Positions 2,359 through 64,000 of a stretch of 64,000 bases of DNA are shown here, in pieces; the stretch's first letter is position 1, and every line of letters begins with the position of its first letter. The notes beneath the pieces were generated by a model that was not told the origin of the DNA, did not search any database, and worked only from the letters and a program-made list of their open reading frames with translations. Origin of the DNA: Bugula neritina (lineage: Eukaryota; Animalia; Bryozoa); assembly GCA_964035545.1 (NCBI GenBank), contig OZ037769.1:17328633-17392632 (forward strand). Reading direction: 5' to 3'. The position numbers and the translations under genes are program-made.

Positions 2359-5300
2359 ATGGGTCAACTCATTTCTGTCCTCAGACGCAAACCAAGTAAG
2401 TAAATCATATAAATATAAATACCACTTAACTAGTGACTACAGAACTTGTATATTCTACTTGTATGTGTGTTGACTTTTGAGGTGCAGTAGTGGAGAAAAT
2501 GAGCTAGCATAAGTTCCTTTATTTTCTTAGCAAATTTGAGGATGGGTGCTGGTTGAAATTCAGAACATAACTTCTTTTGCTCTTTCCTGATTTGGAAACA
2601 CAGGCTTTCTCACTTTTATGCGTTATATATTACCTCTGTTTTCATCACAGCTGAGTATTATGTTGCTTGTCCTCACCTATATCCTCACCTATCTCCGCTC
2701 TTTCCTGTTCAGGTAGCGGGTTGCTGCCGGAGGCCTAGCTCAATTCGGCTGCTCAACCTAACCCTGTCCCGAGCATCCTCTTCATTGACGGAGCACGATT
2801 GGAGATTTTTTCTGATTGTATTCTGCCATCCATGCTTTGGGCGTCCCCGGTCTCTCTTTCCTCGAATTCTCAACTCATGCACTCTTCTGATATCATCCTT
2901 TTAATTTCTCTCTTTTGCATAATATAAGTCCAAACCACTGCAACTTTCTTCTCATCAATTCTAACACATTCATTACTTTCACTTTTTACCTTATGCTCTT
3001 GTTTAGTTTTTTTAAGACTTTCTTGTAGCATAGCACCGCGGTCAGCTCTCTACATTTATCCCAGGCTCTGCCAATTCGCACTTATACGTCTGTCCTGCAT
3101 CTTCCTGGTGGATTGTAGTTCCCAGATCATCTGCAAACAGCAAGCTCTATGGTGTGTCTTCAACATTGTCATCCGAGATAACATCCATTATAATTATAAA
3201 AAGGAAAGGGCTTAGGGCTGAGCCCTGGTGTAGTCCAACTTCCAGTCTTATTTCTCCTGTCTCTCCCGCATTTGTTACTACTATTGCTGTTGAGTCCTTG
3301 TACATATCCTTGATGATACTGATGTAAGCTTTGAGTACATAGTATTTCCTTAAACAACCTTGCTTGTGTTTATTACATAATGTTGTATATTAACTTATAT
3401 TATACTACACTATAGCTGTTAGATACTGACCTATATTATACTATACTAATATTAATATACTTATATTATAATATACTATAACTATTAAGCTAACCTATAT
3501 CGTACTCTATTTATATGTATTATATTATATTACGTTATACTATATACAATCAATTGTAATATTATATTACAACGCAGAGAATTATAAAAACATGGCCGCA
3601 CCTTTTTACCTGTCATCTGCTGTAGTTGAAGTCTGCACCAGCTACAAGGTTGAGTCATACTGTTAGGTTATAGTCTGACAACTTAGTGGGTATACATTCA
3701 GATTATGTCACAGGATTTGGTTTGGAGTTATAAAATCTCAAAGTTTACTTCAATACTGTTTATAGTGTGGAGACATATATTCTGTTATTTGATATCAATG
3801 TTATTATTCATATAGTGGTGAATATTTTGTAGAGAAGTACAAGGTGTGGTTCAACACATCCAGTATAGATGGAGCTTATGATGAGTGGATGGAGAGAATG
3901 ACTACATCCTACACTATAGAAAAGATCAAGAAGAGAACTAGACATCATACAGTGACTCATGTTAGACTGGAGGATGATATTCCTCCAAATATGAACACAC
4001 TGTTTCCTCATCTCACACATCTGAGGGTATCTAGAGTACACAGAAATGCTGACTGGACCAGGTATACTAGTGTCATAACATAAAGCTATATTCAATAAGT
4101 GACATATTATCTAATTGTAGTAGAATGTGGAGTAATCTCCCCTCACAATAACACTACCTTTAGTAACAACTGTTGTATTGTTTGCCTGGGTTATTATATT
4201 TCTATTTATTATTCAATTCAGTTTAATGGTAATGAATCTCATTCAAACTAATATGTGATTTAAATTATATTATAGAGTACGTTGAATACTGCAATACCTG
4301 TGTGTTATGTTACAGTATATGTTCACTGAAGAATCTTGAGGTATTGAATATATCATATAATAACCTATCTGAAGGTTTACCTGACAATATATTCACATCC
4401 TTACTATCATTGAGAGAGTTGAATATGAGGGCCTGTAAACTTCCAACTCTACCAAACAGGTGTGTATTATATTATAGTGTAGAATGGTACTGTAATAAGT
4501 ATAAGTTATAAATATATTATAGATATGATTAGGTAGGAGTGTATGGTATTTTTAATATAAAACATTTCACACCTGTGTGCTATGTTACAGCATATCTTCA
4601 CTGAAGAATCTTGAAGTATTGCATATATATGGGATTAACCTATCGGAAGGTCAACTTGACACTATATTCACATCCTTACTATCATTGAGAGAGTTGGACA
4701 TGTGGAACTGTAAACTACCAACTCTACCAAACAGGTGTGTGTTATATTATACATTATGAAGTTGTCTGCACTATCTTTATTGAGTCAACTAGACTCTGTG
4801 TATACGACACGTCATAAGACAACTATTCTATTCTATCAGATGTACTCAGATAGAAATGGTACCACAACTTCTCACTTATTACTCTAATAAATTCATTGAT
4901 AATTAAATTGTTTTGTTACAAAATGAACTCTATTGAGACTTACCTGAGAGTTGTATATTGTAAGGTATAGAATTTTTAGAGAACGTAATGAATAGAAGAG
5001 AACTAACAAAATAATCATTTTCAGCCGTAATTATGAAACTCTCATAGATTTAGATACTGAGATATAATATAATATTATACTGAGATATATTATAATATAT
5101 TATACTGAGATATATTATAATGTTAAATACTGATATATATTATAATACTATACTGAGATAGATATATAATATTATAATGTTATACTGAGATATATTATAA
5201 TATTATACTGAGATATATTATAATATTATACTGAGATATATTATAATATTATACTGAGATATATTATAATATTATATACTGAGATATAATATGGCAGTCA

Positions 5301-8300
5301 ATCAACTGTTACCTAGTGATGCATTGTATCATTTACCTACTCTTTTGTATCAAATAACTGGGAGTAGAACTCCTAACAGCTAGAAAATATTATTGTTTTT
5401 ATACTATGCATTGCACAATCTTATATATTTATTATAATTATGAATTGTATTATGGAACTCCAATGTTTATTTTTGTGCAAACCCCATATTTGAAACATCA
5501 AATATATTTTATATTTATTAGCATGCAGAGTCTACAGAAGTTAGAGAAACTGAACATATCAGATCACAACTTCACCAGTTTACCATCTCCTGTGTACTCA
5601 CTGAGTAGTCTGCAGGAACTGGATATCTCTCGTAATTACTCCCTGACATCCTTAGATTCTGAGATACTACAGCTAACTCAGCTTCATACACTGCATGTTG
5701 AAAGATGTGATGCTCTCGCATCTCCTCCACTAGAAGTATGTGAGAGAGGAGTAGATGCTGTGAGACAATATTACACAGACTTAGCTAAAGGTGCTGGTAG
5801 AAGTCTACCATTTGCTACTATAGCTGTGCTGGGTAATACGATGGCCGGAAAGACCAGTCTAATCAGAACATTACAGAATGCTGACAGAAAGAGAGTTCTG
5901 ACCAACAGAGGTCCAGATGCTGTGAGAGATGAGACAACAAAGGTGTTTAATGTTGAAGAGGTGGAGGTGGATGGTACAGTACTCCGTGTCATTGATATGG
6001 GAGGCCAGGAGGTCTACCATATCACCTATCAACTGACACTGAGACAGAATTGCATCCCAGTCATAGTAGTCAACATGGAGCAGTATGATAAGATTTCAAA
6101 TAAATCAACACACAGAGAAGCTGCTAGAAGATTAGCATTTGATTACATGTCTCACCTCTATCTGGCTAACCCAACTCTTGGTCCACCAAAACTTATCTTC
6201 ACCCATAAAGATAAGTTTCAAAGTACAGAGTTTCAGAAGCTTAAAGAAAACTTTCTAGAAACTTCAAATCGACTGTGTGAGGAGATGATTAAGGAAGAGA
6301 AAGCATTGGGTGGAGAATTTGCTCGAATCAAACATTTCAGTGAAGCAACTGATGGAGTCTTTCTTGGTGAGGACATTTATGAGCTGGGAAAGGATGATAA
6401 GTATGAAGTGTTTGACCTGATCAAGAAGTCTCTTCTTCGAAGCAGTCAACATTTTGTAAAACCTTTACCTCTTATCTGGGAGAAAGTGAATGAAAAAGTG
6501 CTGTCTATTCCCTCTGTGTACAGCACCTTTGATGAGACACTAAAGTACGTACAAACAGAACTTCAACACATTGAGTCAAGTCAGCTGGACATAATCCTCA
6601 CATACATGCATGACTGCGGCAAAGTCTTGTGGTATAAAGATATCAGCTGTCTCAGGCCATACCTATTCCACAAGATTTCAGAAGTCACCAAACTCCTCTG
6701 TGTCTTGTATCATCATGATCCTAAGATCTGGCAGAGTAGAGTTGACCAGTTCGAGCCATACTATTCACAGACTGAAGTACGTGTCGAGAAGCAAGACTTT
6801 GAGAAATCTGTCAATAATTTCACTGACACTTGTTTGATGATGCAGTCACTTCTTTTTTATTTCATTGAAAATGAGACATCATTCAGTAGCTCCAAGGATG
6901 TAGAAGTTGCCGTCTGCTTACTCCAGACGTTTCGTTTGCTGCACGGTCCAATACATGGCGAGTCTGAAGAGCCGTGGTTCATTGTACCTCAGTTTGCTAA
7001 AAACTACTACAGCACCTCCTACTCCTCACCCAAAGACATGCGTCTTCAAGTGGAGACACAGTTCAATGGTCTAGCCCTGCCACAATATGTCTACCACCAG
7101 ATGACGGTCGGTTTGTTGGAATCGTTCCCAGATGAGTTTGCTGTGATGGAAGTGAAGAGAAACGGAGCCAATGTCTATCAAGATGGAATCTACACACAGC
7201 TGGTACATGATTACAAATCTAGAAAAGTGTCACTCCACGTGTCATCCAATGCTGCCAACATCAGCAGAATGTGGGAGAGACTCATCACGACCAACAACAA
7301 CATCCTTAGACATGTTCTAGAAACCTGGACAGCAAGTAGAGCAGTCACTACATGCTACTGTGCTCACTGCCTTTTGCTAGGACTTCCTTGTCCTAAGAAA
7401 GTACTCCATCCTCCGTGGTGTCTTCGCTCCTTGAAACATCCCACACCAAGTCCCAGACTGTGTGGTGGATCTTCAACAACTCTGTGTGGTGATGAGGAGA
7501 TACTGAGTGCTCTTCTCTATCCATGTATGTTTGGTTACATTATGGTGCAGTGCGTGTAATAGCTTTTATTTCACTCTAATTTACCACATAATTTAGAATT
7601 GAATTGAGTTAATCCTCCCCATTCCTTGGTATAATTGGGGTTAGAAAAATATAGTGAGTTGGAATTATTTATTATATTTTCAAGTATTTCAAAATTTTAG
7701 GTAAAACACTGTCCGAGAAAGAAGCTGATAAGTTTGAGAAGTTTGTGAAGGAACTGAATCTTCGAGGAGCTCAAGGAAAATTAGCTAATTCTGGTAAATA
7801 CCAAGTTAGCAGCTTGTGCAAGCGTGTGTTTTTTAAATGTTAATTAATTTCAACTTGAGCGATGAATTATTCTACTGCATTTTATTTCATACCATGTCAA
7901 CAGTTTTTTTAGGAATGTGTATAATTTAAAAATTTAACTTTATTTTGCAAATTAATGAAAGCATTTAGTTTTATATAGTGAAGCAATGAAAGCATATTAC
8001 TGAATTACAGCTGAGTACTAATTTGCCAATCTTTGTATTTCTTATTTATTCCATGATGTGATATGAATTTGTACTTTATAGTTGCCAACAGTAGCCAATC
8101 AGATCTCCCGACCTCCACAATAACAGCCAATGATGATCTCAGTGATCTCTCTGATGATGATGAGAATCTGTACCCTGATAGAAAGGAAGTTGAAAATATG
8201 AAGTTTATAAGACTCAGACTGAATCCCACCAGTAACCCAAAGATAAGACAGCTGTTCTCAAACACTGACAAGGTGATCACTTCTAATGTCTATGTCCTTT

Positions 8301-10016
8301 CTTCTTGCTGGTTGTTTAGTTCAGCAGTGACACGTATTTCTCTGTTACATCCAGGTGTTTACTATGACTAGAAAAAGAGGAAGAGCTCTGATAATAAACA
8401 ACATAAACTTTGAGAAGAGACCAGATTTGTGTAGGAAAGGTTCAGATGTGGATGTAGAGAATTTGTCCACCATGTTGAAATATCTCAAGTTTGATGTTGT
8501 GACACACACAGATCTGAAGGCTGAGGTATTTCTTGTTGCTGTTTACTTATCAAGTTAAAAACTTACTCCTCTGTTAGTTTACAAACTCTACATATGTATA
8601 CAGAATACGATTTAAGGGTTTACAGTTCTTACAGTTTTCATGAATTTCAAAAAGATGTTCAATTTAACATAGGACTTCCGCCATCCCAATTTCATTATTT
8701 TACTTCCTGTTGTAGAAGATGCTGTCTGCTGTAAAATCTGAGGTGAAAAAAGAGGAACACGAAGATCTGGGATGTCATGTGTTGGTTATCATGACTCATG
8801 GAGGGCTGAACAACCACATCTATGGTACAGACCTGAAACGAGTGAAACTAACAGATGTGTATGACCTTCTGACCCCTTTGAACTTCCCTGGAATGGCTGG
8901 CAAACCAAAGGTTGTTATACTGGAAGTCTGTAGTGGAGGTAATGAATTTATAAAACATTTGTGGTCACTGCAGAGTTGTGTTCTCTTGACTGTTGAGTAA
9001 TTCTTACATGTTTGACACTGTTTATGTTCATTATATGAAGTAAATATAAATGTTTTTATATCTCTCACAGAGAGGAGTGATTATGGCCAAAGAGGTATAG
9101 ACAGATTTGATATCGGAGAATCACAGAAGGAGGGGGAGAGTATCTCACCTTCACTTGCTAAAGTTCCAGGAGACAAAAATGCTGAGGCTATGAATAGACT
9201 GAACTATGATGACCTGCTAGTAGTGAAATCTAGCATGGAGTGTAAGTAAGACACATGTAATGGAGTACAAGTTACTGGATCCATGGTATTATTCTGTATA
9301 ACTAGTCAACTAGTTGTATTTCCAATAGTTGAATAATTTATATGATTGATTCTACTTGTAGCATTCATATCAAAAAGTCACCCTGAGTATGGATCTCTAA
9401 TGGTTAGAGCTCTTGTATCTTCCATGTATAAACATGCCTGTCACCATGACCTCTACACTATATTCAAACAGGTTAATGTATTGCACTTTGTTACACTTAT
9501 AAGCATAGAGAACTGATGAAATTGAAAATGGCGCAAAATAATATTAGCTGTTGGCCAACTTGAATAATTTTAGGAGTAAATATTTATAATTATTTTACAG
9601 TTTGTTGTAGAGTATTCACAGTTTACTTGTGTTATAGTGTAGGTATTTTTATGGTGTAGGTACTGTTATAGTGTAGGTATTGTTATAGTGTAGGTATTGT
9701 TATAGTGAAGGTATTGTTATAGTGTAGGTATTGTTATAGTGTAGGTAATGTTATAGTGTAGGTATTGTTACAGTGTAGGTATTGTTATAGTGTAGGTATT
9801 GGCTATTTAGAATAATATGGTATGGAATAGTAATAAGATTTCACTGTTTATTTGCTTAACATTCTTCAGGTACAGACTAAAGTGAGAAAACTGTGTTTAG
9901 ATAAAAATCTAGAGAGTGGAGGACAGCTGGTTGTAGTCTGGGATACTCTCACTCATATGAGAAAACTTTACCTGTTTCCTGGGTTTAATGGCTACTCAAG
10001 AGAAGATGACTCTTAG
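2359..10016 (+). CDS. LRR-ROC-COR (ROCO) protein fused to a C-terminal caspase (peptidase C14) domain, ~1220 aa, 12 coding exons
   Basis: Exons 2359-2395, 3833-4061, 4316-4459, 4591-4734, 5522-7524, 7701-7793, 8082-8272, 8355-8525, 8716-8938, 9071-9241, 9362-9471, 9870-10016 are all GT-AG and phase-compatible (3663 nt). ROC: GNTMAGKT, IDMGGQEVY, THKD. COR-like: YMHDCGKVLWY, FIVPQ. Caspase: RGRALIINN, RKGSDVD, IMTHG, GKPKVVILEVCSG, YGS, KLYLFPG. Confidence 0.88.
2670..3365 (-). mobile_element. Decayed RTE-type LINE 3' fragment in the first coding intron of the ROCO-caspase gene
   Basis: The minus strand encodes remnants such as GKRDRGRPKAWMAE. Its 3' end (...RIELGLRQ..., ATAGGTGAGG tail) parallels the RTE copy at 18760-19975. 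Confidence 0.6.
5052..5292. repeat. Intronic AT-rich minisatellite (~22 bp, TATACTGAGATATATTATAATAT)
   Basis: Direct tandem copies visible. Confidence 0.85.
9630..9800. repeat. Intronic 17-bp tandem repeat (GTTATAGTGTAGGTATT)
   Basis: Direct tandem copies. Confidence 0.85.
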
Positions 10017-18086: not shown

Positions 18087-18759
18087 GGCGAAAATGTATA
18101 ATTTTAGCAAAGATAAAACAGATAAAATTGTAAACGTCTACACTTGAGGTATAATATCGTTAGAAATTAAAAATAAATGTTGACATTATTTTCACGTGTC
18201 TAGGAATCAAAACCGGACGTACTTATTGCCTTCCAACGGTTAAAGTTCACACTCGTTGTCAAATTATATTAAATCTTAAGCTAGGGCGTCAAAGTATTTC
18301 CATCAAGCTAGGTTAAGGTTATTTACTAACTAGATATTTATAGTTTTTCAAAAAAGAGTTTAAAATGTACATTTTTTACATATCTGATATCTAGGTGACT
18401 AATAATAATTATGTTGCATTAACAATTTGTATCATTATGTGCAACTTATGTTGCTTTTGGCGTTATGATTATCAAGTAATAGAGTATCTGTTATCAGTAT
18501 CACTCTCACTGTACACTGGTGACCTGACCAGTGACTGTACTGTGTACACTCAACACTGTACAGTGTGAGTGTATGAGACTGAGTATCACTATCAGTAAGA
18601 GTATCAGTATCACTATCAGTTATCAGTATTACTAAATGACTAATACTATCACTATGGTACTGGTAGTAACTATGATATAACATTAGACTTAGTTATTAGT
18701 GTTATAAAAATCTTTATATTAGTTATTACTATTAGTATTAGTATTACTATGAGTATTAG

Positions 18760-19975
18760 TGGAGAATAGGATTAGAGGCTTGGTAAAAATATCAGACAGG
18801 CAATATGGATTCCAACCCGGAAAGTCAACAGTACAACCAATGTTCTGCCTCCGGATGTTACAGGAGAAGATGAGAGAATATCAAACAGACCTCCACATGG
18901 TATTCGTTGATCTTGAAAAAGCGTACGACACGGTGCCACGAGACCTCATATGGTACTGTTTAAGAAAAAAAAGTGTACCAGAGCAGTATGTTAGGATTAT
19001 TCGGGATATGTACAAGAACTGCACTACATCAGTTACAACCAGCGAAGGAGCAACAGAAGAGATAGACATCGAAGTGAGGTTGCACTCGGGATCTGCGTTG
19101 AGTCCTTTCCTGTTCATAGTCATATTGGATGTAATCTCAGAAAAAATAGACGAGAAAATACCGTGGGCAATGCTCTTTGCAGATGACCTAGTTATCTGCG
19201 ATAGAGAGGGAGAAAGGGTAGAAGAGAGATTAGAGGCATGGCGTGGACATCTAGAGGACGCAGGTCTCAAGGTGAGCCGGAAGAAAACAGAGCATCTTCC
19301 ACCAAGGGAAAGCACCACCAGGATCAGAATGAAAAGATATGACCAGGAGGACTACACTGAGCTACAAATAAGTTCAAGTATCTGGGGACAGTGATAGATC
19401 AGGATGGAGGCTGTGAGGCTGAAGTCACAAGAAGAATAAGTGCAGCGTGGGATAGATGGAGGGACCTATCAGGAGTTATGTGTGATAAAAAAGTGCCTAA
19501 ACAACTGAAGGTATTACTCTACAAAACAATCATAAAACCAACACTGATATATGGCAATGAAACATGGCCCATCACCCAGAGGCAAGAACAAAGGATAGAG
19601 GCAACCGAAATGCGAATGCTCAGACACATATATAGAATAAACTGGGAGGATCATGTTGGGAATGAAGACATAAGAAGCGAAGCTAAGGTTAAACCTGTGT
19701 CTAGGTATATGAGGAAGAGAAGACTCCAGTGGTATGGTCATGTGCAGAGGAGAGATAGTGAAGAGGATATTAAATATGTGACTGAGTTGAAAATAGTGGG
19801 GAAGAGAAAGAGAGGACGACCCAAACGAAGATGGATGGACACGATAGGAGATGACATGAAGCGATGGGATCTTAAACCGGAGGAGGCAGAAGACCGGGAA
19901 AGATGGCAGACGCTGATAGAGATTGGAAACCTGCAGACCGGTCACCCGTACAGGACTATGACCGCATAGGTGTGA
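18760..19975 (+). mobile_element. 5'-truncated RTE-clade non-LTR retrotransposon (RT fragment, one frameshift) with 17-bp TSD
   Basis: RT motifs QYGFQPGKST, FVDLEKAYD, GSALSPFLF, LFADD; C-terminal RLQWYGHV and GKRKRGRPKRRW. Frameshift near 19370. TSD ATTACTATGAGTATTAG at 18743-18759 and 19976-19992. Confidence 0.92.
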
Positions 19976-36659: not shown

Positions 36660-39600
36660 TCAACTCTGCAGATGTTTCTGAATGAGTATTTTGAGGTTGT
36701 AGTTGGGGAGGAGGATGTTTGCTGTCAGAGGAGCGTTAGTCATCGGACTGGATGTCTTTCCGGCAGCCATCCAAGACAGCATGGCACTTTTCTCATACGA
36801 ATATCCGTCTACAAGAAAGTATCGCAGTAAATGTACCTCTTCAGTGCGAGAGTATTACACCAACACTCAGTGGACATGTGGAGTTGTCACCTACCTGAAG
36901 CTACCACTGGCTCCTTCATTATCTCATGAGTGATTGGACAAGTGAACTCGTGAGCAGTATCACGGGTGGGGGTCACGCCGTCCCCTACTGCACTGCTTTG
37001 GGTTAGTAACTGGTCTAAACCTCTCATGATTTTGTTCCTGGCTCCATACGCACCTGGTGGAAGTATATCGTATCATATATGTGTGATACTTATGATATGT
37101 GTAATACTTATGATATGTGTAATACTTATGATATGTGTAATACTTATGATATGTAATACTTATGATGTGTAATACTTATGATATGTAATACTTATGATAT
37201 GTGTAATACTTATGATATGTGTAATACTTATGATGTGTGTAATACTTATGATATGTAATACTTATGATGTGTAATACTTATGATATGTAATAGCTATGAT
37301 ATGTGTAATACTTATGATATGTGATACTTATGATATGTGTAATACTTATGATGTGTGATACTTATGATATGTAATACTTATGATATGTAATACTTATGAT
37401 ATGTGATACTTATGATATGTGATACTTATGATATGTGTAATACTTATGATATGTGTAATACTTATGATATGTAATACTTATGATATGTAATACTTATGAT
37501 ATGTGATACTTATGATATGTGATACTTATGATATGTGTAATACTTATGATATGTAATACTTATGATATGTGTAATACTTATGATATGTAATACTTATGAT
37601 ATGTGATACTTATGATATGTGTAATACTTATGATATGTAATACTTATGATATGTGTAATACTTATGATGTATATATTACTGATAGGAAGTACGAATGATT
37701 TATCCATTCATAATGACAGAATAAGTTACTGATCAGAGTCGTCACACCAATATACATAGAAAATATTCCCTAAAGCTTTCTACATCAAAAAGCTAAACTG
37801 TGATTGCGTCAGTTTCCGTAGAGCCTACACGGTAGGGGTGGGAGAGCTCGCCAACCTACCAACGCCAATCTCCGTCTCCAGCACCTCTTTAGTCAGATGC
37901 TGCAGTTCGCTGCCGTCTATGTCGTGCTGCCGGAAACTGCCGGTATGTTTACCCAGTCCGAGACTGCTCAGCCAGTGGCAGACGTCCTCTACAGACCATG
38001 TGGTCAGGTCAGCTGCAGGAGCCAATGGCTGGCTGGTCCCATGACTCACAGTGACTGCTGATTGGCTGGAAGTTAGTGTGTCTGTTTGCTGATTGGCTGG
38101 TTGGCCCAACTGAATGAGGTTAGGGGTCACACCTGCAGGAGATAGGAAGAGTTAATAGGCGAGAGTTGGTACAGACAGGGGGGGGGAGAGACAATACTTA
38201 GAGCATGTATTATAAACATGAGAAAATGTATAAACAGTATCTCCGTTGATAACAAATATACACTGAGAATTTCTATCTATTCCACTTTAAATTGCTTTGC
38301 TTTCACCTGATTCTTGTTCCTGTTCAGTTGGCAGAGAAAAAGAAAATCGAATACATAGAGAAGTTCAAGGATTATGATTCAATAAACAGGCAGTAAATGG
38401 GGTGTAAACAGGTTAATGACTAACAACATACCATTATTCACCAGCTTTTATATTATAATGGTATGTTAGAGCAGTTGGCAGTTGCTATGGCAACACATCT
38501 TTATTATTATTTATTGCAGTTGAAGATCAGTCAAGGAAATACATGACACAGTAGAGTATAGGGTGAGCATAGCAAGCAACAGGACTGAGAGAGAGAGAGT
38601 TGGTGCTAAGTGAGTTAGGTGAGTTATGTACAGCTTTCATAGGTGTAGCTTTGTAACGACACACCTGATACAGAGGTGGCATTGCGATGGTACACATGAT
38701 ATAAAGGTGATAAGGTAGTGTTACGGTGATACATACAGAGATGGAAATATACCTGATAATACCACATCAATTATTCTCCAATTATTTCAAGTCAACTATG
38801 TTGCCTGAACAACATTTTTCGAGGAGCAAATATTTTCAGGATAAGTCATCTTTAACATGTGATAACTTCTTAAATATATGACATGGCACTGCATTTACAC
38901 AAGAGAGTTATGTTTCTACAATGACCACAAGTTTTATCCATTATCCGTCTTATTGATTTGCGATCATGGCTGAATTGAATGGCTGAATAGGTGATTGTCT
39001 TTACTCAAAGCACTTTTTACCCTGCCCTATTCAGCCTTTATAAATATTATATGCTGCTGTTGTTATGCTTTAGTTGGCCTGTAACTTGATCTGTGGCTGT
39101 AAGCAATTGTCACGTGACAGTGCGGGTACATGACTATAAGTTAATAAGTACCAGCACAATATGACCCTCTGGTCCATATGTTACGCACCAGCAGTGGGAC
39201 TTGAGATCAATTCACACAAATGTTACAGCTCAGACTAGTTTATATCTAACGGCATTATTATAAAGGTTAGTATTTCAAGTCTGTTGTATTGAGAAATGTC
39301 AGTGTATAGAGATTGTCATCTACTAGGGTTGTAGTGTCTGTGTAGTAATTAGCTGCATGTTATATCTCTACACTGTCTCCTCATACTTGTACATGTCTTG
39401 GATTTACTTCTTTCAGTTCACCAGACTGAGCTGAGGAGTGAGCAGTTGAGTGCCATCTACAGCGTGAAAGTAGACAGTGGACAGGCAGCAGTGGAAAGGC
39501 GGTGGCAGCAGAGCTAGCAGTGTGCTCTGCGATGTTAAAGAGTCTAACTAGTAATGTCACCTATAAATAAATTCAACCAGTTAGTCACGGTTGAGATAAT

Positions 39601-42600
39601 CACCTTTCTCTTCTGCTTCACTATTCCGATTATTCAGTTCGCCGTACAAGACCTCCTCTACGTGAAACTCTGTCTCCAGAACGAGAACACCACCGACAGT
39701 CTGTGTCACGATAGACAATGGATAAACAAACACAAAGAAACCGAAGGGAAGACATCTTTGTGGATCATGTATATCAACATCGCTATCGTAATACCTGCCA
39801 TCATTTCTTCCATATTCCAGGGAAGCTATATTGACAGGTTCGGCTTCAGTTTGCCAACACGTCTACCACTGGTTGGAATCACCATAGCCTGTGGGGTGTC
39901 AGCAATTGTAGCCTTGACAAACGTGCGGCACGAGCTCCTTATTGTAGGCATGGTCTTGATGGGGGCGTGCGGACACACCCCCGCCTTTATGATGGCGGCA
40001 AATGCGTATGTAGTGAAAGACGCAAGTGGTGAGAAAAATAAGACACTACGCCTAGCCATAGTTGGCTCGTGTCTTGCCATAGGCATATCTGCGGGGACAG
40101 CCGTGATTGGACCAATCTCAGACCATCTAGGACTATACTGGGTGTTTCTGATTGGTCTGTTTAGTTCATTACTAGCTCTACTAGACAGTGTGCTGAGAGT
40201 GAGACCTCCGAGACATCAGCCACCAGCACCACATGGCAAACACTTTCTCACTAAACTGAAGGAAACGTTTGAACTACGGACCATGAAATCCTACATCAAG
40301 GTGATGACTAGAAGTAGAGAACATTCCAGAAGGTTACACATGCATCTGATGACTCTAGTATTTGTGATCTCCTTCTGTGCCCTCATAGGGGTGGTGGACG
40401 TGGAGTTCTTGTACCTAACAAAGGAGAAAGGCTTCACCACCACCCAGGCTAGTATATTCATGAGTGTAGCCATGCTGCTCATGTTCTTTGGTAAAACTCT
40501 CGGTACGTATGTACTTAGCTCCAAACTCGGACTGAATCTCATTTACATAACAATGATTGGCTCCCTCAGTGCAGTAATAAACTATACCGGCTTTTCATTG
40601 GCTAACTCTTTCGCAGCTCTGTGGGCCTCAAATGTGTTCAAAATGTTCAGTGGCTTGAACTCAGTAATGACAAGATCGTACGTGAGTGGATGCGTGGAGA
40701 TGAACGAGCAAGGAACCATTATTTCATTCATGTCGGTCACGGAGGCCATATTCAAACTGATAGCATCGTTTGTGTTCAACGGACTATACCCACTTACGCT
40801 GACAACGTGGCCGGGAGCCATGTTCATGGTGGCAGCAGTGCTGTGTGTCAGCGGAATACCTGTACTCGGCTTCATCAGGTGGCATGAGCTGGGAACAGGT
40901 GCTAAGTACGTCATAATGAGTGAAGACGGGCAGATGATGGTGGATGATAACTCCAACTCCAAGTCTGATTCCAACTCAAAGTCTGACGATATTGAAATAC
41001 AAACTTTGTAGAGTACTAGCACTGCTAGTAGTAGTACTGTTAGTATTAGTACTGATAGTATTAGTACTGTTAGTATTAGTACTGTTAGTATTAGTACTGT
41101 TAGTATTAGTACTGTTAGTAGTAGTACTGTTAGTAGTAGTACTGTTAGTATTAGCACTGCTAGTATTAGTACTGTGAGTATTAGTACTCATAATACTAGT
41201 GGTATTAGTACTAGTACTGTTAGTATTAGTACTGTTAGTACTAGTACTGTTAGTATTAGTACTGTTGGTATTAGTACTGTTAGTATTAGTACTGTTGGTA
41301 TTAGTACTGTTAGTATTAGTACTGTTAGTACTAGTACTGTTAGTATTAGTACTGTTGGTATTAGTACTGTTAGTATTAGTACTGTTAGTACTAGTACTCA
41401 CACTAGTAAGTACTCGGATTACAAATACTATTATCACTGAACTCTCAAAGAATAAACTGAAATATAGATGTGTTAGTTAAATCTTGAAATACTCACCTCT
41501 GAGGTTGAGGGTGTCGGTGATCCCCCACACCTTTACTGTCCTGTCACAGGAACACGTGTATATCTGCTTGTCGTCTGCGCTGAATGCCAAACTGTTGATG
41601 AAACTGCAAGATATTCACAGGAAATCTTAGAGTAGAGTTAGCATAGTCTCTAAGAGATAACTCGTAATATATGAACTTGTTTATAATTAGAATCTCTCTA
41701 TTTATGTGCTTATTCATGTCCTTTATATCAGAGATACTGTTTTATATCAGAGAAACTGTTTTATATCAGAGATACTGTTTTATATCAGAGCGAATATTTT
41801 TGTAACAAACCATAAAAATATTGATGAAAAACATAAACCCGTGAAATACATTCCTCCACTGCTCAGGAAAAAGATACTATTAAGGGAACAGTAGAGTTGG
41901 TGTAGCATTTGTTACTATAACTACACTATAATATATTACCTCAGTAGCCAAAGAGCCAGCTGTTACATTATGACATGCTACAAACTGATAGTATTGACTT
42001 CAGCTGAGAGGTGCAAGTATATACAACATATCGTGTGTAAGACTAAACACAGTGCTACACAATACAACTGGTAGGGGGGGGGGGGTATGTAGGGGTGGAT
42101 ATGTAGGGGAGGGAGAGGGGGATACGTAGGGGTGGATGTGTAGGAGGGGAGGGGGATACGTAGGGGTGGATATGTAGGGGTGGATATGTAGGGGAGGGAG
42201 AGGGGGATATGTAGGGGTGGATATGTAGGGGAGGGAGAGGGGGATATGTAGGGGTGGATATGTAGGGAGGGAGAGGGGGATACATAGGTTATCATCTCAA
42301 CTTATACAACTAATACAAAGCAGCAAAAGTGACACAAAATGCTGCCTGTCGCATATAGCGGAGGACCAATAGTGATAGTTGAACATGTACGGGGCGTGGA
42401 GCACCCCTCTCCCTCCCAACTCGCTGTGTTCTACTGACTCCACGGAATATAGAAAAGCAGAGCAGTACAGAAGAGATAAGAAAATTTCAAGTGGTCTTCG
42501 ATAGTAGAATTAGTTGTGTAACAGAGAAGTTATTCCCCCTTGACAATACTAGTGTGCCTAGTCATATGCAAACCTTTGATCTACGTGAATGTTTGTAAGG

Positions 42601-48600: not shown

Positions 48601-51600
48601 GTGTGTAAGTATATACAGTAGGTGTGTAAGTGTATACAGTATGTGTGTAAGTATATACAGTATGTGTGTAAGTATATACAGTATGTGTGTAAGTGTATAC
48701 AGTGTGTGTGTAAGTATAGCTAACAGTATATACAGTATGTGTGTAAGTATATACAGTATGTGTGTAAGTATGTATACAGTATATACAGCATGTGTGTAAG
48801 TATATACAGTATGTGTGTAAGTATGTACAGTATGTGTGTAAGTATATACAGTATGTGTGTAAGTATATACAGTATGTGTGTAAGTGTATACAGTGTGTGC
48901 GTAAGTATATACAGTATGTGTGTAAGTATATACAGTATGTGTGTAAGTGTATACAGTATGTGTGTAAGTATATACAGTATGTGTGTAAGTGTATACAGTA
49001 TGTGTGTAAGTATATACAGTATGTGTGTAAGTATATACAGTATGTGTGTAAGTATATACAGTAGGTGTGTAAGTGTATACAGTATGTGTGTAAGTATATA
49101 CAGTATGTGTGTAAGTATATACAGTATGTGTGTAAGTGTATACAGTGTGTGTGTAAGTATAGCTAACAGTATATACAGTATGTGTGTAAGTATATACAGT
49201 ATGTGTGTAAGTATATACAGTATGTGTGTAAGTATATACAGTATGTGTGTAAGTATATACAGTATGTGTGTAAGTGTATACAGTGTGTGCGTAAGTATAG
49301 CTAACAGTATATACAGTATGTGTGTAACTTGTACAATTAACAGCAAACGCTTTCTCAACTTCTAATAACTTTTAAATTGTTACATTAATTTAAATATTCA
49401 AGGTTTGACTAGTGAAGTTGAGAGGTACAACTGGTAATCATCAGTGAAACTCTACTAAAGTTGGAAACTTTATAAAACTTTTATATTCAAGGTTTGCTGC
49501 AGCTTTACATGCCATAACTGGTACCAGAGTATTATATCAGTAGTTGCTGCTGCTGCTGCCTTGTATAGACTGGAATATTACATGACATCATGTTACACAA
49601 CACTATTTAATTAATTGACACAACATTACATCAATTTGTACAGTTCAACATCAAGAATTATTGATTGGAATTCATTTTATAGAATCTAGTAATATACACT
49701 GGTGTGTAGTAATATACAGTGTAGGTGTAGTAATATACAGTGATGTGTAGTAATATACAGTGGTGTGTAGTAATATACAGTGAGGTGTAGTAATATATAC
49801 TGGTGTGTAGTAATATACACTGGTGTGTAGTAATATACAGTGGTGTGTAGTAATATACAGTGATGTGTAGTAATATACAGTGGTGTGTAGTAATATACAG
49901 TGATGTGTAGTAATATACACTGGTGTGTAGTAATATACACTGATGTGTAGTAATATACACTGGTGTGTAGTAATATACAGTGATGTGTAGTAATATATAC
50001 TGGTGTGTAGTAATATACACTGGTGTGTAGTAATATACAGTGATGTGTAGTAATATACAGTGGTGTGTAGTAATATACAGCGGTGTGTAGTAATATACAG
50101 TGATGTGTAGTAATATACAGTGGTGTGTAGTAATATACAGTGATGTGTAGTAATATACAGTGGTGTGTAGTAATATACAGTGATGTGTAGTAATATACAC
50201 TGGTGTGTAGTAATATACACTGATGTGTAGTAATATACACTGGTGTGTAGTAATATACAGTGATGTGTAGTAATATACAGTGATGTGTAGTAATATACAG
50301 TGATGTGTAGTAATATACAGTGAGGTGTAGTAATATACACTGGTGTGTAGTAATATACACTGGTGTGTAGTAATATACAGTGTAAGTGTAGTAATATACA
50401 GTGATGTGTAGTAATATACAGTGATGTGTAGTAATATACAGTGATGTGTAGTAATATACAGTGATGTGTAGTAATATACAGTGAGGTGTAGTAATATACA
50501 CTGGTGTGTAGTAATATACACTGGTGTGTAGTAATATACAGTGACGTGTAGTAATATACACTGATGTGTAGTAATATACAGTGACGTGTAGGAATATACA
50601 CTGATGTGTAGTAATATACACTGGTGTGTAGTAATATACAGTGGTGTGTAGTAATATACAGTGATGTGTAGTAATATACAGTGGTGTGTAGTAATATACA
50701 GTGGTGTGTAGTAATATACAGTGGTGTGTAGTAATATACAGTGAGGTGTAGTAATATACAGTGGTGTGTAGTAATATACAGTGATGTGTAGTAATATACA
50801 CTGATGTGTAGTAATATACACTGGTGTGTAGTAATATACAGTGATGTGTAGTAATATATACTGGTGTGTAGTAATATACAGTGATGTGTAGTAATATACA
50901 CTGGCTTGTAGTAATATACAGTGGTGTGTAGTAATATACAGTGTAGGTGTAGTAATATACACTGGTGTGTAGTAATATATACTGATGTGTAGTAATATAC
51001 ACTGGTGTGTAGTAATATACAGTGGTGTGTAGTAATATATACTGATGTGTAGTAATATACACTGATGTGTAGTAATATATACTGGTGTGTAGTAATATAC
51101 AGTGATGTGTAGTAATATACACTGGTGTGTAGTAATATATACTGGTGTGTAGTAATATACACTGATGTGTAGTAATATACACTGATGTGTAGTAATATAC
51201 AGTGGTGTGTAGTAATATACAGTGTAGGTGTAGTAATATACACTGGTGTGTAGTAATATATACTGATGTGTAGTAATATACAGTGGTGTGTAGTAATATA
51301 CAGTGGTGTGTAGTAATATACACTGATGTGTAGTAATATACAGTGACGTGTAGTAATATACACTGGTGTGTAGTAATATACATTGGCAGCGTTCAACAGC
51401 CTCTGTTGATGCCTTAACTTGACGTGGGAGGATACTACAGAGTGTTGACTCATTTATGAACAAACTTTGACCCTAACAATTGTAAGTTATAATAGTGGAG
51501 TAAGTAGTGTAAGTTATAATAGTAAAGTAAGTAGTGTAAGTTATAATAGTAGAGTAAGTAGTGTAAGTTATAATAGTAAAGTAAGTAGTGTAGGTTATAA

Positions 51601-52557
51601 TAGTAGAGTAAGTAGTGTAAGTTATAATAGTAGAGTAAGTAGTGTAGGTTATAATAGTAGAGTAAGTAGTGTAGGTTATAATAGTAGAGTAAGTAGTGTA
51701 AGTTATAATAGTAGAGTAAGTAGTGTAGGTTATAATAGTAGAGTAAGTAGTGTAGGTTATAATAGTAGAGTAAGTAGTGTAGGTTATAATAGTAGAGTAA
51801 GTAGTGTAGGTTATAATAGTATAGTAAGTAGTGTAGGTTATAATAGTAGAGTAAGTAGTGTAGGTTATAATAGTATAGTAAGTAGTGTAGGTTATAATAG
51901 TAGAGTAAGTAGTGTAAGTTATAATAGTAGAGTAAGTAGTGTAGGTTATAATAGTAGAGTAAGTAGTGTAGGTTATAATAGTAGAGTAAGTAGTGTAGGT
52001 TATAATAGTAAAGTAAGTAGTGTAAGTTACAATAGTAAAGTAAGTAGTGTAAGTTATAATAGTAGAGTAAGTAGTGTAAGTTATAATAGTAGAGTAAGTA
52101 GTGTAAGTTATAATAGTAGAGTAAGTAGTGTAGGTTATAATAGTAAAGTAAGTAGTGTAAGTTATAATAGTAGAGTAAGTAGTGTAAGTTATAATAGTAG
52201 AGTAAGTAGTGTAAGTTATAATAGTAGAGTAAGTAGTGTAAGTTATAATAGTAGAGTAAGTAGTGTAGGTTATAATAGTAGAGTAAGTAGTGTAGGTTAT
52301 AATAGTAGAGTAAGTAGTGTAGGTTATAATAGTAGAGTAAGTAGTGTAGGTTATAATAGTAGAGTAAGTAGTGCAAGTTATAATAGTAGAGTAAGTAGTG
52401 TAAGTTATAATAGTAGAGTAAGTATTAGTAATTAGTTACTTACAGAGCTACCGGAAGTAGTTACAATGACATCTCTATGCACAGCTATACAGTGGATGTC
52501 ACCAGAATGAAGAGGTAGAGTACTTTGCAGTTCCATCACAGTAGTTGAGTCTATCAT
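36660..52557 (-). CDS. WDSUB1: WD repeat, SAM and U-box domain-containing protein 1
   Basis: WD40 exons (~52444-52557, 45011-45145, 44430-44596, 43823-44031, 43499-43714, 42641-42681, 41498-41603), SAM exon ~37859-38132 (WSVEDVCHWLSSLGL...HDIDGSEL) and U-box exons (EFTCPITHEIMKEPVVAS|DGYSYE...SPMTN...PNYNLK). The start exon is less certain. Confidence 0.88.
37078..37670. repeat. 16/18-bp intronic repeat (TAATACTTATGATATGTG)
   Basis: Tandem copies. Confidence 0.9.
38481..38494. promoter_or_regulatory. RFX X-box-like palindrome GTTGCTATGGCAAC
   Basis: One mismatch to the canonical GTTGCCATGGCAAC; ~1.1 kb upstream of the nested transporter ATG. Function untested. Confidence 0.35.
39109..39118. 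promoter_or_regulatory. CLEAR/MiT-TFE-type E-box GTCACGTGAC
   Basis: Exact 10-bp consensus ~435 bp upstream of the SLC46-like ATG. Confidence 0.45.
39554..41011 (+). CDS. SLC46/PCFT-like MFS transporter, single coding exon, nested antisense in a WDSUB1 intron
   Basis: 485-aa ORF with about 12 hydrophobic segments, a Cys-bounded glycosylated first loop (KLC..NTT..C), GSYIDRFG motif A, RSYVSGCVEMNEQG and FNGLYPLT..WPGAMF typical of SLC46. Confidence 0.88.
   Translation: MSPINKFNQLVTVEIITFLFCFTIPIIQFAVQDLLYVKLCLQNENTTDSLCHDRQWINKHKETEGKTSLWIMYINIAIVIPAIISSIFQGSYIDRFGFSLPTRLPLVGITIACGVSAIVALTNVRHELLIVGMVLMGACGHTPAFMMAANAYVVKDASGEKNKTLRLAIVGSCLAIGISAGTAVIGPISDHLGLYWVFLIGLFSSLLALLDSVLRVRPPRHQPPAPHGKHFLTKLKETFELRTMKSYIKVMTRSREHSRRLHMHLMTLVFVISFCALIGVVDVEFLYLTKEKGFTTTQASIFMSVAMLLMFFGKTLGTYVLSSKLGLNLIYITMIGSLSAVINYTGFSLANSFAALWASNVFKMFSGLNSVMTRSYVSGCVEMNEQGTIISFMSVTEAIFKLIASFVFNGLYPLTLTTWPGAMFMVAAVLCVSGIPVLGFIRWHELGTGAKYVIMSEDGQMMVDDNSNSKSDSNSKSDDIEIQTL
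41030..41400. repeat. 15-bp repeat (TAGTATTAGTACTGT) immediately 3' of the transporter stop
   Basis: Tandem copies. Confidence 0.9.
42073..43490. repeat. Cluster of intronic repeats (G-rich 42073-42285; 31-bp 42690-42890; 30-bp 43078-43230; 18-bp 43370-43490)
   Basis: Tandem copies visible in each block. Confidence 0.8.
44019..44396 (-). repeat. 21-bp tandem repeat of a splice acceptor plus exon start (TATTCTAG|GACTATGAGTGTA)
   Basis: The last unit forms the start of the WDSUB1 exon at 44031. Confidence 0.88.
44603..44990. repeat. 12/13-bp intronic repeat (ATAATATACTGT/GAT)
   Basis: Tandem copies. Confidence 0.88.
45237..48364. mobile_element. ~3.1-kb non-autonomous TIR element inserted in a 21-bp minisatellite
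   Basis: Left end ATGTGACCAGTCGCGACAAAACCGGGGATGT matches the reverse complement of the right end, ATGTGACCTGGCACCACAAAGCAAGGGATGT. The array resumes in register (AT TSD, or no TSD if the termini are TATGTGACC). No transposase ORF. Confidence 0.72.
48365..49327. repeat. 21-bp minisatellite (AGTATATACAGTATGTGTGTA); its left part lies at 45153-45236
   Basis: Tandem copies. Confidence 0.92.
49688..51382. repeat. 20-bp minisatellite (GTGTAGTAATATACAGTGAT)
   Basis: About 85 tandem copies with point variants. Confidence 0.95.
51481..52425. repeat. 24-bp minisatellite (GTTATAATAGTAGAGTAAGTAGTGTA-like unit)
   Basis: About 39 tandem copies adjoining the first WDSUB1 donor. Confidence 0.95.
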
Positions 52558-62435: not shown

Positions 62436-63869
62436 ATGTCTTTCACTGAGAAGAGTAATACCACTAAATCAGCTGGAGACAAGATGGCCGACGTACAACT
62501 CAACACGTCCTATCTGATACCGTTAGTCAGCGCTCTAGGTGGAGTAGTGTTGGTGCTATCTGTAGTGCTGGCTGTCATATTCTGTCGAAGATACACGAGA
62601 AGCAGACGTATGAGAGAAGCAGATGACATCAAGGTGAAGGTCATCAAATCAACTCTCTCTGACAATCATTTGGAGTCTTCAGACCGACTTAGTAGTTTCT
62701 CAAGTTCGTCAACTACAGTAAATGAAGACAGTTCGTTGTCCTTAGGGCGTAGGAATGAGCAGCCCCAGAAGTTAATAAATCATGCCCCAGTTCCCGGGCT
62801 ACATAACATCCCGGTGAGACAGAATTCTTCCCCTGAGAGCCCCAAGTCTCCTTCCTGTGAGTTGATGATTGGAGGAGACGACTACGTGAACGACACGAGT
62901 TTTGCATTGCGCATTGTCCCGCCTCCACCGGACTCTAAATGTCCTTCACCTCCGACACCACCTGACGTGACTGTATCAGACTCGACGGCTGTCTTATCCA
63001 CTCCCGATCTCCCAAGAATCAAGGGTCGGAGGTCAAAAAATGGGCCACTCTCGCCTAGTTTACTCGCTAACAAGGAGGCAACGCTACAGAGAGCTTCCGG
63101 TCTCTTCCGCTCCGACACAAAGGCACACGAGTTCTACACCAAGACTATCACCAACTACGAGATGAACAGAAGTCAGCTGCAGTCTGTTAGGATGATCGGG
63201 AAGGGTCACTTCGGCTGCGTGTATTCTGGGAAGGCGAGTAAAGTGCCGAACTCGAGACAGAGGAATCTGAAGGTGGCCATTAAGACGATGAAAAATTCCT
63301 CCCCGGACAGTGAGAAGCAGGAGTTCCTGTACGAGGTGGAGATAATGAAGTTGGTGACGTCACTCAACCACCCCAACATCATCAAACTCCTGGGCTGCGT
63401 GACTAAGACTCAACCTTACCTCATTGTGCTCGAACTCATGAGTAATGGCAACCTGCAGCGATTTCTCCGCGACACGAAGACAGGGGATGTGTATTACAAC
63501 TTACATGATGATAGTGACAGTATTACTGAGCAACACCTAGTCAAGTTTGCTCTGGACATATCCAAAGGTATGGAGGGAATAGCCGACCTTCAGCTCCTTC
63601 ACCGTGACCTCGCTTGCCGGAACATTCTCATAGACCAGCACTTGACCTGTAAGGTGGCCGACTTTGGGTTTGCCAAAGACGTGCTGAACAAGCCGGAGTA
63701 TCAGAGCAAGTCGGTATTCCAGAGACCCCGCCCCACAAGATGGCTGCCCCCAGAGTCTCTCTTCACCTTCAAACACTCTATTCAAAGTGATGTCTGGTCT
63801 TATGGGGTCGTGTTGTGGGAGATTGTGACGCTAGGCAACCTTCCCTACCCACAGATGAGCTGTAAAGAG
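62436..63869 (+). CDS. Single-pass receptor-type tyrosine kinase with minimal ectodomain (first coding exon; continues beyond the window)
   Basis: TM segment LIPLVSALGGVVLVLSVVLAVIFC followed by RR; GKGHFG, VAIK, HRDLACRN, DFG, RWLPPES, SDVWSYGV. Donor GAG|GTAGGT at 63869/63870. Confidence 0.9.
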
Positions 63870-64000
63870 GTAGGTTCTTAGACTATGTAGTGTAAACAGC
63901 TAAGTTCTTGGTAAGAATGCATAAAATTGATACCTTACTGGGTAATATTGGTCGTGATGGAAATGAGATTTGTTTTGTGTGAATATTTTAAGACCGTACA

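Follow-up and report, generated by a model that had tools for sequence, protein, structure and literature searches.

In the brown algae Ectocarpus and Saccharina, the LRR-ROCO genes contain 72-bp exons bounded by phase-2 introns, each of which encodes one leucine-rich repeat (LRR); four codons of the concave face are under positive selection, the cassettes are alternatively spliced, and the genes have been proposed to encode immune receptors (Zambounis et al. 2012, PMC3341825; Teng et al. 2024, PMC11378527). A comparable organization is found in an animal, the bryozoan Bugula neritina, within a stretch of 64,000 nt (G000:C5:17328633-17392632; hereafter the window, with positions counted from its first letter; the contigs of the genome are labelled C1, C3, and C5). 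Two exons of 144 nt, here termed cassettes A and B, would, to judge from the exon structure, make up the entire variable section of the LRR arm in a predicted LRR-Roc-COR-caspase gene. It is probable that they belong to a set of interchangeable LRR cassettes in the sensor arms of this gene and its paralogues, whose residues at the x positions of the LxxLxLxxNxL motif diverge faster than neutral DNA. To our knowledge, variable receptors for immunity or self-recognition have not been described as a repertoire in any bryozoan, and a literature search turned up no publication dealing with bryozoan Roco-caspases or this cassette family.

The parallel with the brown-algal genes, drawn in a first-pass annotation of this DNA, is apt (PMC3341825; PMC11378527): in both, the LRR arm lies upstream of Roc-COR (in the bryozoan, of Roc and a COR-like region), the repeat exons are of equal size and phase 2, their number varies between clustered paralogues, and the concave-face codons show a ratio of nonsynonymous to silent divergence (dN/dS, or omega) above 1, which in the bryozoan applies to paralogous cassettes, the orthologues giving ~1.3, not significant. 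The bryozoan system is set apart by its unit of 144 nt and two LRRs (versus 72 nt and one), by the animal host, and by the predicted caspase at the end of the protein; the two systems probably arose independently. In the case of VLR genes, an incomplete germline gene is completed somatically with flanking cassettes, which lack splice sites. With VLR genes the bryozoan family shares 24-residue LRR modules of very similar consensus, a hypervariable concave sheet, and a large genomic pool of cassettes, but its cassettes are normal AG/GT exons already in frame in a complete germline gene; somatic assembly of the VLR type is ruled out by that complete in-frame gene together with the canonical splice sites on every cassette. 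The LRRs of plant NLR and receptor-like proteins likewise belong to clustered families that turn over by birth and death and cross over unequally, with positive selection acting on the x residues of xxLxLxx; they usually are without one-exon-per-unit cassettes, however, and have an NB-ARC switch instead of Roc-COR and no fused caspase. Finally, the animal ROCO proteins LRRK1/2, MFHAS1, and DAPK1 have the LRR-Roc-COR core in common with the predicted bryozoan protein, whose Roc match is above the Pfam cut-off, but they are low-copy, carry kinase or death domains, and have no hypervariable cassette arm, whereas the bryozoan family has many members and a caspase effector.

Cassette A (4316–4459) and cassette B (4591–4734) lie on the + strand, as do all exons of the gene. 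Both are exactly 144 nt long, preceded by AG and followed by GT, with starts 275 nt apart; phase-2 introns on both sides follow from the only open frame, in which the first base finishes a split codon and the last two (AG) start one. Their flanks are near-identical, each exon being preceded by ~19 nt that close with GTTACAG and followed by GTGTGT; in front of A, the end of the intron (4297–4315) reads CCTGTGTGTTATGTTACAG, and its last 10 nt are 92–100% conserved over 72 cassettes. In a repeat search the pair appears as a 181-nt direct repeat of 87% identity at an offset of 275 nt, and is therefore not due to chance. Each exon encodes two 24-residue LRRs, with cores at L7..L17 and L32..L42 and matches to Pfam LRR_1, LRR_8, and LRR_4; among solved structures, cassette A matches (phmmer) the 24-residue LRRs of LRRTM, VLR, and repebody chains with E values down to 3e-15. 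Between A and B, 21 of 144 nt differ and 11 of 47 in-frame residues are replaced (2, 11, 13, 14, 15, 21, 22, 24, 36, 38, 39), five of these by changes of 2–3 nt; the purely silent differences number four (in-frame codons 8, 18, and 42, and the split Ser codon, AGT versus AGC). Of the replacements, six (11, 13, 14, 36, 38, 39; Fisher p=0.006) are located at x positions of LxxLxLxx, and the 11 residues IFTSLLSLREL are invariant and identical even in DNA. On all these descriptive points, and on the modular character of the exons, the first-pass annotation was borne out.

A search of the whole genome showed the cassette to be anything but single-copy: at least 142 copies are spread over C1, C3, and C5, since 142 sites in the genome match a 33-nt framework core when up to 3 mismatches are allowed, 83 being perfect copies, against 0 for the reversed control. 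The 449-nt stretch spanning both exons (4297–4745) gave 69 scored genome matches, among which are arrays with a period of 275 nt located 25 kb upstream and at 14.58 and 14.74 Mb of C5; many matches lie at 33.8–35.0 Mb of C1. The analyses of cassettes that follow cover 72 of the ≥142, recruited by similarity from 284 kb of sampled genome, in which 72 of 74 matches have a length of exactly 144 nt, AG and GT at their borders, an open frame, and a phase-2 intron on each side; a nhmmer search gained just one extra full cassette. The 72 cassettes encode 71 distinct peptides. Given their 144 nt and the phase-2 introns that flank them, cassettes can be placed, or spliced, in frame in any number between exon 2 and the LRR-Roc-COR exon. 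Where both ends were sampled, 2, 2, 4, 4, and 4 cassettes separate the conserved exon 2 from the large exon, and paralogues with fewer ends sampled have at least 5, 7, or 8, so that these frame-neutral modules range from 2 to ≥8 per paralogue. The gene in the window thus has the shortest array seen, a condition it shares with one other paralogue. The same 144-nt design is also present in a related lineage.

Variation within the cassette is confined to small patches. The framework columns, silent positions included, are 96–100% conserved over the 72 cassettes, and so are the last 10 bases of the upstream and the first 16 bases of the downstream intron. Twelve x positions had been fixed beforehand from the LRR consensus (x2, 3, 5, 7, 8, and 10 of each repeat), and the eight most variable codons (14, 39, 38, 36, 41, 11, 16, 34) are all among them, an enrichment with p=1.6e-6 in a hypergeometric and p=7e-5 in a Mann-Whitney test. 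An AlphaFold model of one cassette, made with the 72-row alignment and of moderate mean pLDDT (74.9), has strands at 9–11 and 34–36 and a helix at 23–28; the strands adjoin the variable residues, which are placed by prediction on the concave face (beta-strand and ascending loop).

Among paralogous cassettes, the x positions exceed both silent and intron divergence, and to this extent the diversifying selection claimed in the first-pass annotation holds. By parsimony, the x positions have undergone 249 non-silent and 18 silent changes (binomial p=1.5e-6), and the other positions 96.5 and 56.5; a codon model on the maximum-likelihood tree gives an omega of 7.7–8.0 for the x positions, with a likelihood-ratio statistic of 229–258 versus omega_x=1, and 0.8–1.1 for the rest. 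The tree-free pairwise estimate is 0.348 for dN at x positions versus 0.079 for exon-wide dS. Because silent sites might be atypical, introns were used as the neutral yardstick, namely the homologous 127–140-nt inter-cassette introns of ten C5 units, that of A included, aligned with MAFFT; ungapped intron profiles had overstated intron divergence and were replaced by this alignment. The interior of the C5 introns has a divergence (K) of 0.107 and the ten strict x codons a dN of 0.26, a ratio of 2.45 (bootstrap range 1.70–3.91); the remaining codons evolve at 0.26 of the C5 intron rate. In six pairs of units whose introns are less than 6% apart, 27.8% of bases differ in the variable codons of the adjacent repeat, compared with 3.6% in the introns (7.8-fold).

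The silent sites are informative about age. For the Roc-COR exon, dS between the gene in the window and its paralogues is 0.17–0.37 with an omega of 0.22–0.37, and on these codon comparisons the large exon is under purifying selection. Silent divergence of the cassettes is 0.08–0.09, even between C1 and C5; this lies far below the Roc-COR values, so the cassettes are either much younger than their host genes or exchanged among them. A decision about silent-site constraint is permitted by a metagenome contig of the related lineage (JGI samples 3300002729 and 3300003318), which matches G000:C1:22716814-22725027 colinearly through exons and introns alike (91% identity) and has five cassettes in the same order: silent divergence of these orthologous cassettes (0.093–0.133) equals that of the intron (0.092), which means that the low dS among paralogous cassettes reflects recent shared ancestry and not constraint on silent sites.

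Several observations weigh against selection for diversity at the x positions. The A/B pair itself has a Nei-Gojobori omega of 0.59, that is, no dN above dS, and with 5.3 silent sites at its ten x codons, too few to be informative, the pair alone is no evidence of diversifying selection; in this respect the first-pass annotation, which had read the pair as such, asked too much of it. Five of its 11 replacements lie off the strand, in the scaffold, and B may, from the nature of its changes, be under relaxed constraint. The orthologous cassettes, which represent a single family member with five cassettes that is different from and more diverged than the gene in the window, have a proportion of nonsynonymous differences (pN) of 0.127 at the twelve x positions versus 0.092 in the intron (K=0.098), an excess of ~1.3-fold with p=0.19, and 0.040 at the remaining codons; it is among paralogous cassettes that the x positions clearly outpace neutral DNA, and for orthologues the same has yet to be demonstrated. 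Recombination among cassettes inflates tree-based omega, and the sample is limited in number and was recruited by similarity. Moreover, divergence at the variable sites plateaus at ~0.35 in every comparison, near the silent divergence of Roc-COR between C1 and C5 (0.21–0.37), and shows no scaling with intron distance; old neutral variation standing beside a homogenised framework retains some plausibility.

That last thought leads to an explanation by relaxed constraint only, in which the x positions drift neutrally, conversion and purifying selection keep framework and flanks uniform, and no special role in recognition exists. The orthologue ratio, the omega of the A/B pair, and the plateau, which resembles the gene-level dS of distant paralogues, are what this explanation would lead one to expect. 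It has to accommodate, however, that conversion of a 144-nt exon should homogenise the variable patches as well, unless selection preserves them; that units with near-identical introns already differ 7.8 times more at variable codons; that the lower bound of the ratio of x-position dN to intron K is still 1.7 and omega_x=1 is rejected by the likelihood-ratio test; and that 71 of 72 cassettes yield distinct peptides. We regard it as unlikely, though the most serious competitor to interchangeable cassettes with fast-diverging x positions. A much more local history was implied by the first-pass annotation, which called A and B tandem duplicates: a single exon would recently have been duplicated within the gene in the window and then diverged fast. 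Adjacency, equal length and phase, and the common flanks are in keeping with this, but it is contradicted by kinship: A and B share 123 of 144 nt, less than the family mean of 130, and rank each other only 68th and 56th of 71, while A finds its closest relatives, at 134 of 144, among the cassettes that other genes carry on C5 and C1 (the best match of B has 130), and the intron between the two (4460–4590, 131 nt) is of the usual family type, its homologues in C5 paralogues also lying between cassettes and diverging by ~10% on average. The tree puts A among the first-position cassettes of other C5 genes and leaves B alone on a long branch; A thus looks like a standard first-position cassette and B like an unusually diverged last one. 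The wording "tandemly duplicated" therefore suits, as far as these alignments tell, the history of the family and not that of the A/B pair, for which a recent local origin is very improbable.

The peculiarities of B could also be signs of decay, either of this cassette or of the whole gene, such that the scaffold changes amount to loss of function and the two-cassette array is the remnant of a longer one. Four of the five scaffold replacements are rare or private in B (N15I and N24T are unique among the 72, L21Q occurs in 2 and P22L in 5); B also carries the unique S13Y, lacks the Asn of the asparagine ladder (N15I), and is among the six most deviant cassettes. The shortness of the array and a retroelement fragment in intron 1 point the same way. 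Both cassettes are nevertheless open with canonical AG/GT sites, the large exon is intact (666 codons) and, as its omega indicates, constrained, the caspase pieces are open, and a second paralogue has two cassettes as well; decay is accordingly given little credence.

If interchangeable cassettes are what the family is built on, the following course of events can be proposed. Units of exon plus intron (275 nt on C5, corresponding to cassette A and the intron following it) would recombine unequally, so that arms acquire or shed two-LRR cassettes without a shift of frame; recent shared ancestry or homogenisation, together with purifying selection on the framework, would keep that framework near-uniform down to its silent sites and splice flanks; and some 8–10 codons at the x positions would diverge several times faster than the neutral DNA next to them. 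The variable face may then bind a ligand, and binding may control the Roc-COR switch and the fused caspase in the manner of a one-chain immune or death sensor. In a neighbouring gene, at G000:C5:17307829, one cassette has its variable patch 1 in common with the following cassette and its patch 2 with the preceding one, and two successive introns are identical; this looks like an unequal crossover in the middle of the exon. Clusters of family genes are found at 33.8–35.0 Mb of C1 and at 14.6, 14.7, and 17.3 Mb of C5. Two of them are close to contig ends, the window lying at 17.33 of 17.72 Mb on C5 and the C1 cluster at 33.8–35.0 of 35.64 Mb, and such positions may be subtelomeric.

What this would mean is a large, clustered, fast-turning-over family in which a predicted binding face made of swap-ready two-LRR exons shares a single chain with a GTPase switch and a caspase. 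It would be an animal counterpart of the brown-algal ROCO cassettes and a novel, direct link from recognition to cell death. The gene in the window, as the minimal two-cassette form, would offer a natural short-arm variant with which arm length and variable residues can be probed.

An additional level of variation might be sought in splicing. Upstream of each cassette acceptor, at a distance of 12–23 nt, lies a conserved element (…ACCTGT…; …CACACCTGTGTG… on C5 and …ATACCTGTATGT… on C1), which is complementary to the common cassette donor ACAG/GTGTGT; in the window, the stretches concerned are 4556–4582 with 4450–4476 and with 4725–4751. The minimum-energy fold of the A–B intron is closed by a helix of donor and acceptor-proximal element, with a z of only -1.03, and contiguous pairing between donor and element averages 8.6 nt over the 72 cassettes versus 7.0 nt in shuffles, which is a lead only. 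That the element pairs with a donor, be it that of its own cassette or that of a neighbour, and thereby chooses which cassettes are spliced in, for combinatorial use at the level of RNA, is a doubtful proposition at this point; should it apply, one germline gene could give rise to several arms, four in the case of two cassettes and hundreds in the case of nine.

Upstream of the cassettes, a tentative coding exon 1 (2359–2395) has a start (MGQLIS...), ends in phase 1 at a GTAAGT donor, and is compatible in phase with exon 2; the call is tentative because no exon-1-like sequence was found in the sampled paralogue DNA. With RRKPK coming after MGQLIS, this start looks like an N-myristoylation signal plus a basic patch, and if the exon is real the protein would be membrane-anchored. 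Within intron 1, opposite to the gene, a reverse-transcriptase fragment (weak RVT_1 match) occupies 2709–3357 of the - strand. Exon 2 (3833–4061), which begins in phase 1 and finishes in phase 2, encodes the N-terminal region with an LRR-like cap at the end; it is 70–77% conserved in paralogues, where it is positioned just upstream of the first cassette. Downstream of B, the intron leading to the large exon (4735–5521) has no additional cassette inside but does contain a minisatellite (5054–5288) of ~9.5 copies of a 23–25-nt AT-rich unit. The large exon (5522–7524), an intact frame of 666 codons, encodes three fixed LRRs, the Roc GTPase, and a COR-like region: the P-loop GNTMAGKTS is visible and PF08477 scores 31.6 bits versus a cut-off of 27, while for COR no model passed for the window protein and PF16095 was recorded for more distant homologues of this exon. 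The predicted caspase (Peptidase_C14) is represented by open frames within 8355–9000, with approximate exon ends; PF00656 matches 8355–8558 and 8719–9000 with E values of 4e-10 and 8e-11. The Pfam domains of the gene products are thus LRR, Roc, and Peptidase_C14.

The remainder of the window contains a reverse-transcriptase open reading frame (ORF) at 18759–19394, a single-ORF MFS transporter at 39554–41011, and, at 49658–52435, long overlapping open frames on both strands of up to 601 aa that have no Pfam match. At 62436–63881 a single-ORF receptor tyrosine kinase is encoded, which is Cad96Ca-like and finds its best named match in the bryozoan Watersipora subatra (67%), the next named ones being at ~45%, and so bears out an animal host; it is 98% identical to a protein from the JGI and Logan data. 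As to the cassette family in these data, other family contigs from the JGI samples had no orthologue within the sampled genome DNA, and the gene in the window had none among the contigs of the related lineage, where the best protein identity is 82–88%, which fits birth and death of genes or incomplete sampling. A Logan contig bearing a relative was considered as a possible cDNA, but its spacing equals that of the genomic contigs and it is not one. Taken with the 98% identity of the kinase, the related-lineage contigs point to a sibling lineage with a different content of family members.

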